In this document: one piece after another, positions 9,768-51,220 of the stretch
Numbering within the stretch: the stretch's first letter is position 1
How the letters are laid out: every line of letters begins with the position of its first letter
NCBI GenBank assembly: GCA_038496445.1
Contig: JALMLS010000009.1
Location: 186,001-250,000 of the forward strand
DNA from: Trichosphaerium sp. ATCC 40318
Lineage: Eukaryota > Protista > Tubulinea
Direction of reading: 5' to 3'
Length of the DNA: 64,000 nucleotides
Made by a program: the position numbers and the translations under genes
Notes under the pieces: model-generated
Database searches by the model: none
What the model saw: only the letters and a program-made list of their open reading frames with translations
What the model was told of the DNA's origin: nothing

Positions 9768-12152
9768 CTATTCGGACGTTACAGGTTTGTAACCACTTCC
9801 AGTTTTTGACTCTGTAGCACGACGCATCAAGAACGTGTAGATCATTAATCCTATTAACGCAGTTGTACCAAAAACACCAATAAAATAACCCACAAAAACG
9901 ACATCTTTAGTTACTCCATACACACGTTCTTTCGCTATAAAACACAAAATCAGCAGTTATTATTACAAGCTACCTCCGTACCAACAAGGCAATTATCACC
10001 ACAGCTACATGCTGCATCGCAAACATCGTATTCATAACGATCTATACGTAGTCAGTACAACTGAAGAAATACGTACTACTTCGAGGGGAAAATAGTTTTT
10101 CTTCATGTTTTACGTGCCTGGTGTTACATAAACTTGAGTTGTCAAAATAATTGTATGACTATCATGTTCTAAGCGCTTAGCACCTCGCTTAGATTGATGA
10201 CGATGCTCAACAGCAACATCAAATTCAAACTCTACAAAATATGCTTGCCATCCTTTCTTGGCTGGTAAGCTTACACGATAGTGTTTAGGCTCTACAACAA
10301 GAGTTAAAAGGAATAAAAGATTTTGTAGACTACAAACTGACCTTCAGGTGTTAATTCTGTGGGTTTGTAAACGATTGATGATTCATCTGGGGTGTACTTT
10401 CTGAAATCGCGTGCATCTGGGTTGTAAGCAACCCATAAAGTTGCACGAGTAGGTACAACGTTAGTTGCTACAACAAGCTCTTTTTTACCATCTTCAGATC
10501 TTTTGATATGTTCTTCTGTAATATTAGGTGGTACTACGCGATCTACGATCACAGCATAAAAGGTAGCGATGGACAACCTTAACCGAGTTAAGCAAAGGCA
10601 GAAAAAAAAACCAAAAAAAAAAAGTTTCTTTTTGGATAGTTGTACGTACGTTATTCTCTCGTGGTACTCTGTTAGATTGTTGGCTACATTAGGTATGTAG
10701 CGAAGGAACTTTTGTCCTGTTAATTCATTGTAAAAGAATTGTGTAGAATCAGGTGGATAAAACTCGTCTTGAGCGGCATTGATAATGAACTTAGGTTGGC
10801 TAATACGGTTGTTGTACTGTAATGGATCAGTTAAGGTTATAGCTCGTAACCCCTCTTTTGTCTTTAGCCATTTCATTACGCCTTCATTTACATACTCTTC
10901 AAATGCATGACTCCAGTTTCCGTAGGTTCTATAAAACAATTAGCTTGAAGAAAACGAAATTAAGAAAGCCATTAACAAGTGACATACTGATGATGGTGAT
11001 CATGTTGCTTGATGCTATTCAAACCACAATAAGATATAGGAACCAAAGCCTTTACTCTTTTATCAGTGGCAGCGATAAGCCAAGTAGCCCTAGGTATCAA
11101 GGTTAGGATAAAGAATAAAACACGACTCAATAGCAACAAAAAAAATTATACCATCCACGAAGCGAATCACCAACAACCACAAAGTCTTTTACATGCGGTA
11201 ATTTCTCTTGAACAATTGACATTGCAGCAGTGGCAGTCCTTATCATTGGCAATTGTGCATGCTAAGGTAGTTTCATTACGGTAATTCAACCAAATATAAC
11301 AAACAAAAACAATAGACAATAAACACCATAAAACGTACCAGCTTTGGTTGTTTACTGTTATGAAAGAAATTCATCATACTCTTAGCAAACAAAGCGTCTA
11401 TAAAGTAAAGTAAGATATAATTAATAGGCATATATTTCTCGTACGTCCAGAGCGATTTCTAGGTATGGCCTCGTTTGCGAATTCTACTGGACCATTTGGC
11501 ATTTGCCAAAGTTCAATTACAGCTGCTTGAGTGTGTACAGCTAGCTTGATTCCTTCAGGACTAGCTTCATTTGGTGTATCCTCTCTATTGTAGGCATAAA
11601 CTCCAAGAGACGATTTCCAAGGTAAACGTACTTGTGCTCGTCTCCACGCAGTATGAAAATAGCAGTTTTCTCGTGATAGTAGTTCTTTGGTATCGTTCTA
11701 AACTGCGTTAAGATTTCCGTGACAAGTGTCCGTATAAGATTGATAGACGTAATGTAGGAGTTTTTTGAGCAAGTTGTACGTACACGGTCATCCAGTGTGC
11801 CCATAAATTGTTGTGGGTGATATAGTGTTGATCTAACCACAAGAAGGAGCTAAAGCGAAAAACATGCGTCGTATGTGTTTCGTACACTTTTGTATCAGCT
11901 TGAAAGCGTGAATACCTACAACGAGGTTAAATGGAATCAATATTAAATTTCAATGATTAGTAGCGCTACACTAAAGTATATGCGCAGCTGTAGAGCATTG
12001 TATACGGCTAATTTTCAAAATAGTAATACTGCAACCGTATTATTCACGTACACGTCAGACCTCAACACAGAGTACTTGTCCAAGTCACCATACTGTTTTG
12101 AACACGCAATTGCTACTAGCAGCGTTATCACTGCAACGTATTGTATAAGCAT
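9768..12152 (-). CDS. PqaA/AprA-like alpha/beta-hydrolase-fold protein with signal peptide and C-terminal TM
   Basis: VVVGDSLRGWATWLIAATDKRVKALVP, YGNWSHAFEEY, DPLQY, PKFIINAAQDEFYPPD, LRYIPN, ARDFR. C-terminal hydrophobic helix, then RRATESK...E*. Confidence 0.8.
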
Positions 12153-12336: not shown

Positions 12337-15274
12337 TTACTGGAACTTTGACACAGCGCCGTAAATTGTATTGACAAACCAGCTGCACGCGTAGTATCCA
12401 ATGGATCCTTGAATAAAAATAAGCAAAAGGTTATTTGACATTTTTAGACAACATACCTGTGCAAACGAAAAAGGCGAAGCACATCATGAAGGAATAACCA
12501 AAGTAAAGAAGGACTAAGCGGAAAAATTAGTCAAGTGTGCACAAACAAAGAACAATTTAGCATACCTGGTACGAATCCAGAAATGTGCAACGTAGTGGCA
12601 AAGTAAAAGATAGAGTACAAAAACATGTAGAAGGCTGAAGCGCCAGAAGTCATGTATGATCGCCACCACCAATGGTAATCCTAAACGAAAAAACTTTAGT
12701 CAAACAAACCAAAACATATGTATACGTACCTCAGAGCAAAGTTGGAAGTAACACATTACAATGGTAATTTCAGCGCATGTAATGACAAGGATGATAAAGA
12801 CCAAGAATAAAAAGCCAAAGAGGTAGTAGAATCGGTGTAACCAGATTGAAGAAAGGATAAAGAACAACTCAATAAAAACAGCTCCAAAAGGTAAAATACC
12901 ACCCATAAGTACAGAGAAGATTGGGTGCATGTACCTAACACATGAGTTAGAAGAGGTCATTTCATACTCAAAGCATTATCGTACCAGACTTGGACTGGAA
13001 TATGACGTGGAATCTGTTTTGGCTCACAAAGTGGTTTTACTTTCTCTCTACGCCAGGCAAAGTAACTTCCGAAGAAGCACAATGGTACAGAGATACCTTG
13101 ACAGCCATTAGAAATTATAGCGAAAATGTCTAATAAAAAACGTACCGAACCACAAAGCAATGAGAGCGAGAAGAGCTGAGAATGGGATACCAGCAGATGA
13201 GTGCATACCCCAAAGGAAGCAACTCAAGAAAAAGAAAGTACCAAAGAAGATGCCAGGGAAGAACAAAGCAGTCAATAGAGCGTTGCGCTTCCATTTTTCA
13301 CCACCAAGGTTTTTGTAGGTACGGGTTGAGAAGTAACCTGCAACAATACCCATCCACACAAAGAGAACAAGCATAGACATAGTTAAAGCACCTTTGTTTG
13401 CTGGGGAAAGTATTCCGAGAACAGCAAAAACTAAGTAGAAATAAGATGAAACAACCGGCAGACCGACAGTGGACGAAACTATCCAGCCAGGATTCAATCT
13501 GAAACGTACCCATAACAACAATAAACATTCCAGTGACTTGCATTCCTGAACCTACTAGGACAGAAAAGAGCATAGGGTAACGTGGAGGTCTAAATACATC
13601 GGCATATACAAATTTCCAACCAGTCTCATCAGGTTCTTCTACATCAGCAGTGCTGTTGATACGTGTAATTTCTGCGTGAAGTGTACGCATCATAATCATA
13701 GCAACCATACCTTTAACACATTTTTTAGCGTGTTATAAATACTAAAAAACTAGTTTGGTTTTTAACATACCAGATAAGAAAAGAACAATCATGAGGGAGT
13801 TGATGATAGAAAACCAGTGAATTTGACCATCACCGTTCATTGTAAGGTATTTATCCCAACGTTCAGACCATTTAATGTTAGACTTGGACCAGTTAACATT
13901 GTAAGTAAAGAATACATCAGTTTCTTTGTCTTCAGATACATCAAAAGGAGCGTGATGAGTAGCATCACAATTTTTTACGTCTATTCAACATGAGATACAA
14001 GCCGCGACAAGTTAAAATGCAAATACAAGGTTGAAGGGTTACAAATAAATAAAAAAAAAGGTAATTAAATAAAAATTTAAAGTGAAATTCATTGCGCTTT
14101 TCCGCCCACGCGTGGCATAAAAATTACTTTTTTAACCTTTTGACCAAACAAAATACGAGACAAGATAGTAATATGACCCAGAGAGGAAAAAAGCGACAAT
14201 TTGAACGTAATACAAGTATTCTTTGTTGAAAAAAAGTGTAAAAAGAATCACCATACCTCCAGCATTTTTGTATGCGATAGATCTTGGATTAACTTCGAAA
14301 AATACAATTCTGTTACCATCATCTACTTCATTGTAGTGAACAAATATGTCGACGTGGTTATTCAAATGAGAGAATTTTTTTGCAGCTTCATCATTCTCGT
14401 CCTTTTGCTGGTAAGGAATTAGCGGTGGTTGTAAGGTATTTAATTAAATAAAAACTAACCCTAGCACCAATTGCGAAACCAACTTCGTAGGCGAAAGTGT
14501 CGTGATCAGGATCGGTGATTTTTTTCTCTTGCTCCTTTGTGAGGATTTGTTTACCAATACGAGAAGCAGAAGGGAGTGTTAAATCAATAAGCCTAAAAAA
14601 CGAAACGTCAGCTATTATTGGTTTTTTTGTTTTATTGAAACTAGTCTACGTACCAGTGGGCTTTGTATTCTTCCTGAATTTTGTTCCTGTACGCAATTTA
14701 ATAAGAAAATAAAACTTTCTGCTGTTCGAACCTCCAGTCTTTAACTTCGTCTACCGTGAGGTGTTTTTTACACAAGAGGTGACATTTAACAGTTTGGCGC
14801 ATTTCTAACTAAGAAATTAATGTTAGTTTGTAAAGCAACGTGGACAATTTTTTTTGTAACCTAGCGCTCAAAACGCTCCAATATAGCTAATTTCGTAGTT
14901 TTACAAATTTGAAATAAAAAAACAAGTATAAATACCTTATACAGTGACGTTTCAATACTGTCACCAAGCACTATTTCGCCCAGGTTCTCTTTTGTCTTTT
15001 TGATGCTTTTGTCGTCTTTGTCTTCAGCATTTGCTTGTCGGCACACAGGGAGGTTGTGGTAGTTGTATGGTATCTGGGTTCGCACAGAGGTGATCTTATT
15101 AGTCCATACAGTGACCTTACCACCGTTGGCGTAAGTGGTCGGGCGAAATTCTGGGATAACGAAAGCGTGGCGAGAGCTAACAGATACAAGTGCCATAACA
15201 ATGGTAAACACCAAAGCCAAAACACCAAAGGCAATAATGGCCTTGCCATTGCCTGATTTAACCATAGATTGCAT
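12337..15274 (-). CDS. Transmembrane 9 superfamily (nonaspanin/EMP70) protein, TM9SF2/4-like
   Basis: [71 protein letters not shown]. Confidence 0.93.
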
Positions 15275-42613: not shown

Positions 42614-45600
42614 TTATCTCCTGTTAAATTTAAACCAATTAATATTAAAACGAGATGAAAGCATTTGCAGTTTCACTTGATGTTTTCCTCCAGATATGTT
42701 TCCGTTAAGGTTAACAGTAGCTGTAGAATATGTATGCCATCCTCCAGTACCTGGGAAGCTTATAGTTCCCTTGTCAACGTTGTCTATTAATATCTTGACG
42801 GAGAATTGTTCTTTCATCAATGAAGCATGTCGAATAGTGAACGAGTAAGATCCTGACTGGAAGTTTACATTGTCATATGCTAAATACTCTCCAACATCAA
42901 TCCAACCAACATTACAACCTCCTCCGTTATCTGTGGTTCTTTGCATATCCACTTGGGCTTTCCCTGCGACAACTTTACCGCCACAAGCTTGGCCTATTAC
43001 AAAGTTAGTAACTTATTTTTTGGAAAAGAGAAAAAGCCAAAGGAAGAAAAGTAAAAAAAGCAGAATATCGGCGTACCTTCATTTTTTGATGTTGTATCAA
43101 AAAAGTCAGTGTATTTCTCGGCTTCAATCCTGTCAGTAGCAGAAAATCCATTGTTGTTGTTGTTGTTATTGTTGTTGTTGTTGTTATTGTTATTGTTATT
43201 GTTGTTGTTGTTGTTGTTATTGTTATTGTTTTGTACTTGCAACTTGGCGAACGGATTTGGGACTGACACTCCGCATTCGCTACAACTGGAAACAAAGTTC
43301 CATACTGGGATTGATTGAGGGTTTGCGTTTCTACTTCTGTCAGCGCAACTAATGCATTTGTCATGGAATATGGCAGGTACGACTAGAGCAGAGGGTTTTG
43401 AAGAGCTAGTGAAACCAGACGGTTGAATCTTTTGAAGGCAAGTTGAAAGGAAGATCGGGTCATGTGGATCTGCTGTTGTCTCGAAAGGACCGAAGGTACT
43501 TGACATTTGACGTGCTTGAACACCATAGCAAATGAGGGCTTTGTCATTATTTCTATGACGGTTCTTGAGGGTGTTACACTCGTTAGGTAAGAGACTGATG
43601 AATCTGTCATATGGTGTGTTAACCTTCGCTGGAGCAATAATGACGCCATCGCAGTTGTTGTTGTTTCTACAAGCATCTACACATGGCTTTGCACCGGCAA
43701 CGTTGTTGTTAGATACCAAGTGACATCCTCCAGTAACGCTTCTACGATCAGGGGCAAAGCAATGATCAACTCTCCTAACAACAAAGTTAGTAAAAAGCAA
43801 GAAGAAAGAAAGAAAAGCAATTACGTACCCGAAAGTGACTTGGTTGCTTTCTTGCTCTTGTGGTGGTTCTGGAACATTATTGCGAGGTTGAGGTACGTTC
43901 ACTGGCTTGACAAATGTCGTTCCTTTGTTTCCGTATATGCTCGCAACTTGTTGGCTTTTGTAGTCAACGTGAACACAATCGTAGTATCCATGCCAATGCC
44001 ATGCAACAATATACCTTCCGAATTTAGATCCTTTAGGTATTGTGAGTTGAGCGACATCGTTATCGAACGGTCTGTGGCTAGTTATACGATACTTGTATAC
44101 AGCGAGCATATCAGGGTATTTACTACTTCTATATGCGCGGTATTTGTTGTCCTTGAGGCTTCTCGTGGTGTATTCATAAAGCTTGTACATTGTTTGTTTT
44201 TGACCTTCGAATTTTATAGGTCTTTTGTTGCTGAATGTATCTCGGAGGTACATTGGATCACCTGGTTTAATCTCTCTCTTGTATCTAGTTCCGAACGCTT
44301 TTCTGTTTAGGATCATACGGAAAAGAGGCGTTCCGTCAACTTCAGAGCCTCCTGGAGCGTTTCTGAGGTAGTCTTCAAATTCGTTCTTTCCGCGACTTGC
44401 AAACTTCCCGAGTGACTCCTCAGCGAGGATAATAAGGTATGAAAAACTATGTTCAGGATGGCCTACTGACCATTCAACTTCGAATTTCTGATCTGGACCG
44501 ACTTGAATGTGTGGTGCATTTCCAGCTTTAGGAGGGCAAGGCTTTTTTGTTGACGATCTGCCTTGGCTAATTGCAGGGGAACCGAGCCAGTTGTGAGCTT
44601 GAACTGTGGTGATAACTGTTGAAAGAGCAATCAAAGCAATTAATGTAATTGCGAGGCTTGGCATAGCTACGGCTCCATTTTTTTTAGTGACAACTAAAGA
44701 AACGAAGAGAACTAAAGCAAGGAGAACGAAACTAATGAGGAATAAGATCGAGAAAAAAAAGAAAGAAAAAAAAAAGAAGAGTGCTAAAAAGGTTTGTACC
44801 TTTGTGATTTAGAAGAAGAACCGCTAGGTAGATCTTGTGCAAGAACTTTCTGGTTTTCAGAGATAACATCGTTTGTAGATAAATCACGTTTTGAACCACC
44901 TGAGCAAGCACAAATACGTTTGATCGCCGAATCACGTGCATTACATTCGACACGTCTATTGCAGTTTGATTGTCTGAAGAAACAGTGCGCTCCTTTTTTA
45001 AAGGTACCAAGTGATGAACAACTTGTAAGAACTAAATCTGCGCATATCAAATCGTTTGCAATGACCATACTAGTCATGCCGTTTTGTGAACTGATATCTT
45101 GGCTCATTCCAGAGTTGCATGTTTTTCCTACGGCTGAGCACGCTTGACTGCATGACTCGCCGACCTTGGACTCATACCAAGTCTTTGGAACACCAGACCC
45201 TTCGTTCAATCTTACGTCACCATTTCGGTTTGGATGATAAAAAGCTCCAGTGTTTGCATCTCCTTGTTTGATGAGAATTCTGAAGAAAATAGGTCCTGTG
45301 CCGGAAGGAGGTGCTTCAAACTTGAAACGTGAAATCAAAGGTTTGATATCTGCAGATGAGTGGGTTACAGAGCGTGAACACTGGTGTCCTGAGTCGCCCC
45401 AAGCTTTCTGGAAGTAAGCTAAACACAAAGTTAGAAAGACTCTGGACACAAGGTTGACTAGCGTTGAACAAAATAGTGCTTACTTGGAACTTGATCGAGA
45501 AGTTTGAACGATCCTACTCGTTTTCCGGTGGAATCTTCGGCGTATAATAGAATACCGCGGTACTAAAAGCGGAGATTAGTTACGACGAAAGTTGTATAGG

Positions 45601-48652: not shown

Positions 48653-49374
48653 CTACAATCTAGAACAAGCATAACATTCTGAATATCCTTTAGGGCACAC
48701 TAAGCGTTGATAGTATCCTGAGGTAAAGCAATCCTTACACAACAGTCCTTGACAACTCTTAGGCACTGCCTCACCAGCAGTAAATGAAACAGAGTAATGA
48801 ATCAAGTTTGATTGTGTAAACTCCACATGGCAGTAACAGCAATATCTAAACCCAAAGACATTAGTACAATGCCAGTACAAAAAAAAAAAAACAGAAGAAA
48901 GAAAGCTCAAAATCTCAACAAGACTAGGAATCAACACAGAATCAAATACAAATATTGCTTCTTAAGCGCTAGCATTTCAATTGATAAAATCAAAGATAAA
49001 GTCTGTTGATACTTCGGTGTTGCAGCAGTTTTTGACTAAGACTTCAAAACCGTTGTCGTAATAGTGTACCTGTATATGTAGTAACATCGCCAAGGTGGTA
49101 GGCAAAATGCGTATAGTGGTACTTCGTAATCGTACTCACCTGGTTCACTGCTTCCAAACAGTTTATTGTTGAGGCGCAGATATTCCCTGAAAGTTTTAAC
49201 GCTCCAATAAACATTATCTTTGTAAATATTGTTAAATAAATGGCTAATACGCCAAAACACGTGTGCTAGATCGTATACAGTCAAGTAGGAAGCAATTATT
49301 GTCCACAGCTCTGGTGGGAGGTAAAGAGATACATTGGAATCTTTTTTAAATGGTTTTTTATCTGTTGGATCCAT
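48653..49374 (-). CDS. F-box protein with Cys-rich C-terminal part (3' end uncertain)
   Basis: LPPELWTIIASYL...W F-box. Second exon has CCYC..LCKDC. Confidence 0.65.
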
Positions 49375-49623: not shown

Positions 49624-50274
49624 TCACTCTAATATCACGAAACCATGTAGCATACTATGCCTTAGTATATTTCGTATTGCTTTGTATTTCTTCATTGTAA
49701 TAGCCCATGCATGTTTATTGTCTACCTCAACTTGATGACTTGTTCTTAAACTCAATGTACCGAAATAATTAATCTGAACAAACCAACTCCAACTGTTGTT
49801 AAGAACATAACTCCTAACATGTTCATGCAATTTATCAAACATGTCAATTGGATAAACTGATGCTGATTTAACTCTTGCTCTTACAATAATGCGTCTACGG
49901 ATCTGTACTGCAAGAGGTCTTATGTCATGAGAAACTTGTATCATATCATGGCAGAGAAACAGTTGGTTTAAAATCTCCCTTGCCACTGTTTCTGAGTTTT
50001 TTGTTTTGTCTTCTCCTTTACCTGTTAGACTGTATAACCATATTGCCACCAATAAATCAATACGACAACTTGATCTTTTTACTTCATCGCAGTATTTCCA
50101 AAAGTTTTTGAATAGTCGCATGTCTAATAATAGTTCTATGTGGAATGGACGCGTCAGTGATTTCTCCTGGCATAATAAAGAAAAATTAACGTTAATACAT
50201 TTAATTTTACTAAGTGTTCGTAGTGGTAACGCTTTAAGTATTATGAGAAGAATTTCATTTGGCAATAAATCCAT
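49624..50274 (-). CDS. Intronless F-box protein
   Basis: MDLLPNEILLIILKALP..TLSKIKCINVNF N-terminal F-box. 216-aa uninterrupted ORF. Confidence 0.7.
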   Translation of the reverse strand: MDLLPNEILLIILKALPLRTLSKIKCINVNFSLLCQEKSLTRPFHIELLLDMRLFKNFWKYCDEVKRSSCRIDLLVAIWLYSLTGKGEDKTKNSETVAREILNQLFLCHDMIQVSHDIRPLAVQIRRRIIVRARVKSASVYPIDMFDKLHEHVRSYVLNNSWSWFVQINYFGTLSLRTSHQVEVDNKHAWAITMKKYKAIRNILRHSMLHGFVILE

Positions 50275-50533
50275 ATTGTGGCACGTGTTGTTTCTTAAAC
50301 TTAATGAGTTATGGTCAATTTAATTACACACTGACATTTTCCCACAGCCCTCTCACATTACAACGCATGTTAGGTTGTCTGTGTGGTTGTAATATGTTAC
50401 GTATAAAAAATATGCGTAACACTTGCATTAAGTGCCTTTCAAACTATTGCAAAGGCGTTGAAAGAAGTTGTGTTCAACACGTTCAAAAATATGTAAAAAA
50501 CAATACTGATTTGCTTACCTTTCCAGCCATTTT

Positions 50534-50548
50534 AAAAACCTTCAAAAA
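50534..50548 (-). terminator. Pol III-type oligo-T terminators (two T5 runs)
   Basis: TTTTT directly after the terminal helix (50548-50544) and a second TTTTT at 50538-50534. Confidence 0.55.
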
Positions 50549-50673
50549 GACCCAACCCTTGCGGGATAATATATGTGCTACCACTACACCATGGGGGAAG
50601 TAAGTCCCCCAGTGGGATTCGAACCCACGCCGTAAACTCCGAATGTTTGAATTAATGAAGTACTATTGGGTCT
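50544..50673 (-). tRNA. Putative circularly permuted tRNA (anticodon TCG, Arg) or tRNA-mimic ncRNA precursor
   Basis: 3' half AAAC-ATTCGGA-GTTTA-CGGC-GTGGG-TTCGAAT-CCCAC-TGGGGGA (50648-50605), spacer CTTACT, then 5' half TCCCCCA-TG-GTGT-AGTGGTA-GCAC-A-T (50598-50573). Termini AGACCCAA and TTGGGTCT pair. Confidence 0.7.
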
Positions 50674-50696
50674 GACTTTAACATCACAAAAACAAG

Positions 50697-50704
50697 TATT
50701 TATA
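50697..50704 (-). promoter_or_regulatory. TATA box (TATAAATA) about 30 nt upstream of the predicted start of the permuted tRNA-like RNA
   Basis: Minus-strand TATAAATA begins 31 nt before the A at 50673 that opens the terminal helix. Confidence 0.55.
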
Positions 50705-51220
50705 CATCGCAGTTGAACAATAAAAAAACTTGTGGTTTTACAAACATGCACAGAGTGCAAAATGGCCAATAGTAAACCGCTACATGATTTTTTAATCTAT
50801 TGTACAGTTTCAGAGAAATACCGAAAAATTGATGTTAACTTTACTATTAGCTTGTTATCACATCCGTAGTACCCCAACATAAACTTTGTTGAAGCTACTA
50901 TGGATCAGTTTTATTTTCCTTAATCTGCACACTCAACAAAGCGTATCTTTGTAGTTAATAAAGAAAGAAACGCACGTGACTAGTGAACTTTATTTATTTC
51001 TTTGTATTTCTCGATGGACATGTGATTTTTACTATAGCAGGTTGCCTTCACACCAGAACAATATCAGTACTGATATCTACCTTTCCAATATGTTGTTTCT
51101 TGGGCAGTCTGATGGACTGAACAGCAAACGACAAGTAATAAAAAGTCTGGTCTAGTCAAAAAGTAAAAAATGATACAATTAATAATAGCGGTGACACTGA
51201 TAGTATCAGCTAACGCAATA

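Follow-up and report, generated by a model that had tools for sequence, protein, structure and literature searches.

This work concerns a small locus in the genome of the protist Trichosphaerium sp. ATCC 40318, which lies in a stretch of 64,000 nucleotides (nt) of contig JALMLS010000009.1 (positions 186,001 to 250,000). The whole of this stretch was analysed and is called the window in the following; all coordinates refer to it. On the minus strand, at 50544-50704, a compact arrangement was found, here named the Arg unit, which extends from a TATA box through a run of five T residues (T5) and holds the two halves of a predicted arginine transfer RNA (tRNA) in inverted order. The succession of elements is TATA box, first strand of an 8-bp terminal helix, anticodon arm, variable loop, T arm, closed 7-bp acceptor stem, D arm, a hairpin with a GCAA loop, second strand of the terminal helix and T5. 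The elements were placed by reading the minus strand between 50400 and 50850 and by a script search for each of them. Bases and positions match the element-by-element description given in an earlier reading of the DNA that used no database searches (hereafter the sequence-only reading).

On the upstream side, the unit begins with the TATA box TATAAATA (50697-50704), the presumed external promoter; from its first T to the base that opens the terminal helix the distance is 31 nt. The same string occurs six times in the window when both strands are counted. The 5′ strand of the terminal helix, AGACCCAA (50666-50673), is the presumed start of the transcript and is paired in the minimum free energy (MFE) fold as well as in the centroid fold. 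It is followed by an AU-rich leader of 17 nt, TAGTACTTCATTAATTC (50649-50665), which leads from the helix to A28 in tRNA numbering and shows no likeness to the missing 5′ half of the tRNA.

The 3′ half of the tRNA comes first in the DNA (50648-50604) and is separated by the spacer TTACT from the 5′ half (50598-50573) on the same strand. It opens with the anticodon arm AAAC/ATTCGGA/GTTT plus A43 (50633-50648), which corresponds to tRNA positions 28-43 and carries the anticodon TCG together with U33 and G37. The variable loop CGGC of 4 nt (50629-50632), the T arm GTGGG-TTCGAAT-CCCAC with a perfect B box, GGTTCGAATCC (50612-50628), and the 3′ acceptor strand TGGGGGA (positions 66-72; 50605-50611) follow without interruption. 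The hexamer CTTACT (50599-50604), composed of the discriminator C73 and the 5-nt intervening TTACT, forms the loop that closes the acceptor stem. On its other side stand the 5′ acceptor strand TCCCCCA (positions 1-7; 50592-50598) with U8 and G9 (together 50590-50598), the D arm GTGT-AGTGGTA-GCAC with the A-box region and A14, G15, G18 and G19 (50575-50589), and finally A26 and U27 (50573-50574), which end the 5′ half.

Downstream of U27, an AU trailer, ATATTAT (50566-50572), reaches to the GCAA hairpin and shows no likeness to the missing 3′ half; its length of 7 nt is a small correction to the sequence-only reading. The hairpin CCC-GCAA-GGG (50556-50565) is capped by a GNRA tetraloop. Because it directly abuts the 3′ strand of the terminal helix, TTGGGTCT (50548-50555), hairpin and helix could form one continuous stack. 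The last T of the helix and the TTTT behind it make up the T5 run (50544-50548), which is the presumed terminator of RNA polymerase III (Pol III).

In genomic order, neither a tRNA by ARAGORN nor a family by Rfam at gathering thresholds is detected in the 64-kb window. Joining of the two halves at 27/28 yields a 71-mer that ARAGORN recognises as tRNA-Arg(tcg). The stems of the re-ordered 71-mer comprise 7 bp in the acceptor, 4 bp in the D arm (one of them G-U) and 5 bp each in the anticodon and T arms. Its MFE structure is the exact cloverleaf at -23.8 kcal/mol, and U8, A14, the G15-C48 pair, G18G19, T54-A58, U33 and G37 are all present as canonical bases. The 71-nt tRNA-Arg(UCG) cloverleaf of the sequence-only reading is reproduced by program call and by fold. 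Read from the sequence, the junctions 27/28 and 28/29 give the same product, since the 5′ half runs on as ...GCACATA and the 3′ half is preceded by ...CA-AAC. It had further been stated that the U27-A43 pair depends on joining of the halves, yet this pair can already form across the break of the precursor.

The presumed transcript of 130 nt folds at -44.5 kcal/mol (z = -3.3), and its MFE structure contains the terminal helix, the T arm, the closed acceptor stem and the GCAA hairpin. The complete tRNA-like precursor fold, a five-way junction, has -39.3 kcal/mol and lies about 5 kcal/mol from the MFE. The U1-A72 acceptor stem and the D arm presumably recall tRNAs of the Glu/Asp type. CGA, the codon in question, makes up 11 of 100 arginine codons in the long open reading frames (ORFs) of the window. 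However, a tRNA-Arg(ACG) bearing inosine could read CGA too, so codon use in the window decides nothing.

That the tRNA parts came together by chance can certainly be dismissed. When both strands of the window were searched for T arms of 5 bp with a TTYRANN loop that lead into a closed acceptor stem of 7 bp, only the Arg unit and one AT-rich match without a D arm were returned, and in a B-box search the unit gave the single perfect match. TATAAA occurs 0.59 times and T5 4.1 times per strand-kb of the window; from these densities, the probability that TATAAA at -31, the helix and T5 are arranged together in this way is about 1e-5, which is a post hoc estimate. The terminal helix is persuasive only in this combination, with TATAAA at -31 and T5 directly after it.

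On these grounds we tentatively explain the locus as a self-contained small-RNA gene that would encode a circularly permuted tRNA-Arg(UCG), be transcribed independently and mature without a bulge-helix-bulge (BHB) motif, an account to which we give slightly less than an even chance. As the A and B boxes stand in the wrong order for TFIIIC, transcription is expected to start from the upstream TATA box, which would drive Pol III-type initiation at AGACCCAA. Termination at T5 would then leave a transcript of about 126-130 nt whose ends are paired. Its closed 7-bp acceptor stem could be opened by RNase P and tRNase Z, whereby TTACT would be removed and CCA added, leaving an acceptor 3′ end that reads ...TGGGGGAC-CCA. 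Such an opening of the loop is plausible because the bacterial tRNA mimic YrlA of M. smegmatis, which has a closed acceptor stem of likewise 7 bp, is cut by RNase P and then receives CCA (10.1101/312249).

The remaining break at 27/28 would have to be closed in order to obtain a decoding tRNA of 71 nt plus CCA. Since a BHB is absent, closure must take another route than the one through BHB and splicing endonuclease. The single-stranded, AU-rich leader and trailer may be trimmed and the ends sealed by an RNA ligase. Alternatively, covalent closure might be dispensed with altogether, and the terminal helix and the acceptor stem could hold together a two-piece tRNA. Two-piece transfer-messenger RNA (tmRNA) provides a comparison for this alternative. 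It derives from circularly permuted ssrA genes in alpha-proteobacteria and some cyanobacteria (PMC3978253). Like the Arg unit it has a permuted gene whose product could work without re-ligation, with the acceptor-end loop excised and the pieces held by base pairing. However, it belongs to another RNA family and is bacterial, and the analogy extends to the mechanism only.

Permuted tRNA genes are reportedly known from Cyanidioschyzon merolae, from Ostreococcus and Micromonas, from chlorarachniophyte nucleomorphs and from Thermofilum pendens, as is said to have been described by Soma in 2007, Maruyama in 2010 and Chan in 2011. A review catalogues 34 such genes from C. merolae, four prasinophytes, the B. 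natans nucleomorph and T. pendens (PMC3978253). According to the same source, the known junctions are 20/21, 37/38, 50/51 and 59/60, the intervening sequences measure 1-74 bp, and most permuted genes of C. merolae are preceded by a TATA-like element and followed by a T-stretch. At every known junction a BHB or a relaxed form of it is predicted, which is taken as the entry point of the splicing endonuclease (PMC3978253).

Many of these features are shared by the Arg unit. On one strand its 3′ half precedes its 5′ half, the order of the A and B boxes is inverted, leader and trailer pair together, and the re-ordered halves give a canonical cloverleaf. The 5 intervening nt plus the discriminator fall in the range of 1-74 bp, and TATA at -31 and T5 mirror the TATA-like element and the T-stretch of C. 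merolae. On the other hand, neither a BHB nor a relaxed BHB stands at its junction, which is located in the anticodon stem at 27/28 and not at any of the four known positions; judged from the sequence, this position is new among the permuted genes listed. The leader-trailer helix is placed 17 nt from the junction on either side, and the host is a non-photosynthetic, amoeba-like eukaryote. A circular RNA intermediate and a mature, CCA-tailed tRNA are further features of the known system.

Several points weigh against a permuted tRNA gene, among them the junction itself. A script represented each strand as a 4-bp central helix followed by a 3-nt bulge, with the cut behind the second bulge base, set between two outer helices, and it enumerated strict and relaxed geometries over a range of cut sites and bulge sizes. 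At the cloverleaf-compatible junctions 27/28 and 28/29 no BHB of the form hBHBh′, HBh′ or hBH was found (one of four central pairs, zero to one flanking pairs), and the most BHB-like placements at other sites would put a cut within the D stem. The caution voiced in the sequence-only reading, that a strict BHB could not be drawn, is borne out. The closure without a BHB that we propose has no precedent for tRNA. In addition, the gap between terminal helix and junction amounts to 17 nt on the leader side and 17 nt on the trailer side (7 nt plus the 10-nt hairpin), and by its placement the helix resembles a stem that protects the ends of a stable small RNA more closely than a device that positions a cleavage. 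Taken alone, the 8-bp helix has a p of about 0.04, as about 4% of shuffled or genomic flank pairs of equal size contain one. A32, C73, U20 and the 4-nt variable loop are, as we assume, unusual for tRNA-Arg. A look-up of RNA sequencing runs for 50440-50780 listed none, and the exact permuted Arg pattern has no match (0 in metagenome contigs, 0 in viral contigs).

The main rival explanation is a stable tRNA-mimic small RNA similar to YrlA and other Y RNAs, which we consider possible, although rather unlikely. In this case the transcript of about 130 nt would stay intact or would only be nicked at the acceptor loop, would be held by its terminal helix and would not decode; its tRNA-shaped domain would face a protein partner such as a modification enzyme, a synthetase, a nuclease or a Ro-like protein. 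The absence of a BHB and the long unpaired spacers between terminal helix and tRNA body speak for such a molecule. Small RNAs of Pol III that are stable typically have paired 5′ and 3′ ends and a U-tail, and those of the Arg unit would fit this general picture.

The layout is also that of YrlA. With the Arg unit it shares the order of T arm, loop-closed acceptor stem and D arm as well as the pairing of the 5′ and 3′ ends in a terminal stem, and the closed acceptor stem has 7 bp as in the YrlA of M. smegmatis. In a permissive Rfam search of 50480-50760 (281 nt), YrlA (RF02553) was the best match, with 27.4 bits and E = 4.7e-4 for the searched 281 nt. This is far short of the gathering score of 69. 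The alignment rests on the T arm, the closed acceptor stem and the D arm, whereas the outer stems are flagged as non-pairs: the terminal stem of the unit, 8 bp perfectly paired and without a bulge, leaves the outer stems of the YrlA model unmatched.

In YrlA an anticodon loop is missing, and the Ro60 site is located in the terminal stem (10.1101/312249). The Arg unit, in contrast, possesses a complete anticodon hairpin (50648-50633) with U33 and G37, has no recognisable Ro60-binding helix and carries eukaryotic Pol III-type signals, and no Ro60 gene is known in its vicinity. No bulged helix of the Ro60 type is visible in its perfectly paired 8-bp stem, as had been noted before. Moreover, RNase P readily accepts a 7-bp acceptor stem that stacks on a canonical T arm (10.1101/312249), which argues against an RNA that persists as an intact mimic. 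From its sequence, the Arg unit is best described as having the YrlA layout without being a member of the YrlA family. The common order of arms pointed out in the sequence-only reading stands, and the resemblance is one of layout only. An intact anticodon hairpin, absent from a pure mimic such as YrlA, would favour the tRNA. The same reading had offered both a permuted tRNA-Arg(UCG) and a tRNA mimic, of which we give the former the somewhat higher probability. What our analysis upholds is the layout, a tRNA-Arg(UCG) body in circularly permuted order that is provided with a TATA box, a terminal helix and a T-run.

Searches in metagenomes with a relaxed pattern returned 67 loci, which consist entirely of bacterial tandem tRNA pairs and YrlA-like units, with no relative among them; the 3′ half of the unit alone had 0 matches in viral contigs. 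By eye, about 40 of the metagenome contigs share one conserved unit with the order ...CAGCAAT..CTTTCTG.AAAAAAGA, T arm, acceptor stem with a TTGGTC-type loop, D arm TGGTGTAGTGGTAGCAC and AAAAA.GAGAACCTGTT, which is often followed by ordinary tRNA genes. By their appearance they are YrlA-type genes for tRNA mimics, from contigs of phages or bacteria, and they are unrelated to the unit of the amoeba.

A further explanation, which we regard as improbable, is that the locus is non-functional, rearranged tRNA DNA: the remnant of a tandem duplication, the result of another rearrangement or a tRNA-derived repeat, with TATA box, T-run and 8-bp repeat arisen by chance in AT-rich DNA. The p of about 0.04 for the helix and the abundance of T5 runs (4.1 per strand-kb, as given above) are compatible with it, but the joint placement of TATAAA, helix and T5, at the post hoc value of about 1e-5, is not readily obtained in this way. 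Local alignments of the 40 nt upstream of A28 with the missing 5′ half and of the 60 nt downstream of U27 with the missing 3′ half score as shuffles do (p = 0.52 and p = 0.76, respectively). No other copy of either half was detected within 3 kb of the unit, and no tandem repeat at the locus. The sequence-only reading had itself named a truncated tandem array of ordinary tRNAs as the observation that would speak against it. With flanks free of residual likeness to the missing halves and without nearby copies, such a remnant finds no support.

All stem pairs and universal bases of the retained halves are intact, which would be unexpected in a relic old enough for its flanks to have been erased. 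If the unit was born by duplication and loss, this combination of erased flanks and intact halves points to selection on exactly one 3′ half and one 5′ half. A retro-copy of a circularised mature tRNA can be discarded because the spacer is TTACT instead of CCA. Spliceosomal back-splicing was likewise rejected: read from the sequence, there is no GT or AG at the junction.

It is very improbable that the unit represents a tRNA-like element in the 5′ region of the downstream F-box-like ORF (50274-49624), transcribed by RNA polymerase II (Pol II) with TATA as promoter and either released by RNase P and tRNase Z or having a regulatory role. The unit does lie about 270 nt upstream of this ORF on the same strand, and an ATG followed by GTAAGC stands 17 nt past the T-run, but the mini-exon ATGGCTGGAAAG joins in frame to none of the examined acceptors just upstream of the ORF, stops intervene in the frame of the ORF, the F-box-like gene itself is uncertain because its ORF is without homologues and absent from the records, and the helix starts exactly at the expected distance from TATA to start and ends exactly at T5.

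The string ATGGCTGGAAAG followed by GTAAGC (50510-50527, minus strand) has the look of a start codon and a splice donor. As the start of the downstream F-box-like gene this mini-exon, which would encode MAGK, was rejected for the lack of an in-frame splice to the acceptors examined; it may be due to chance or be a separate tiny first exon. The two adjacent ORFs at 49036-49374 and 49624-50274 (both minus strand) have F-box-like N-termini, LPPELWTIIASYL and LLPNEILLIILKAL. For the larger one no homologue was detected in a collection of 5.8 billion proteins, and neither this ORF nor the ORF of 112 amino acids is on record. On the other side of the unit, about 55 nt upstream of its TATA box, a palindrome, TGCAC-TCT-GTGCA, is located at 50757-50769 (minus strand), which could be a promoter element or a protein-binding site.

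The wider neighbourhood is that of a eukaryotic genome. Genes in the window are broken by introns, a GTAAG donor-like site is present, and 20 ORFs of at least 120 amino acids are found in 64 kb. An ORF of 555 amino acids (42997-44664, minus strand) has a signal-peptide-like start, no Pfam match and a run of about 30 asparagine residues (Asn). Poly-Asn tracts are associated with amoebozoan, dictyostelid-like proteins. At 10304-10939 and 13108-15274 (both minus strand) an exon of a homologue of the PhoPQ-activated pathogenicity-related protein (PF10142, E = 1.4e-33) and nearby exons that are TM9SF/nonaspanin-like were observed. The GC content of the window is 37.66%. The draft genome of Trichosphaerium has 37.69% GC and 70.9 Mb in 710 scaffolds; tRNA is not mentioned in the paper (PMC10521059). 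Intron-broken genes, poly-Asn tract, PhoPQ-related protein and GC content together fit the non-algal protist that had been presumed as the host before the origin of the DNA was known.

Judged by its sequence, the Arg unit is real and well formed, a putative permuted tRNA gene that lacks a BHB, is broken at a new position and occurs in a new lineage. In the literature searched, permuted tRNA genes were found only from red and green algae, chlorarachniophyte nucleomorphs and one archaeon, and in all of these a BHB leads the RNA to the tRNA-splicing machinery. Our full-text searches returned no permuted tRNA gene for amoebae, and a review of August 2026 still confines permuted genes to algae, nucleomorphs and archaea (PMC13578239). 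We put forward, as a possible although rather unlikely proposal, that some of the tRNA genes of an amoebozoan may be kept in permuted form, with breaks at the top of the anticodon stem or within the variable region. Their maturation would proceed without a BHB, either by another cut-and-seal route or with an unsealed two-piece tRNA that would work on the ribosome. As ARAGORN and Rfam annotate nothing at the Arg unit, part of the tRNA set of this organism may escape routine annotation. A permuted tRNA gene in a non-photosynthetic amoeba, if true, would widen the known range of this architecture to a new supergroup. It would also mean that RNA ends are joined in a new way, or else that a tRNA or a tRNA mimic functions despite a break in its interior.

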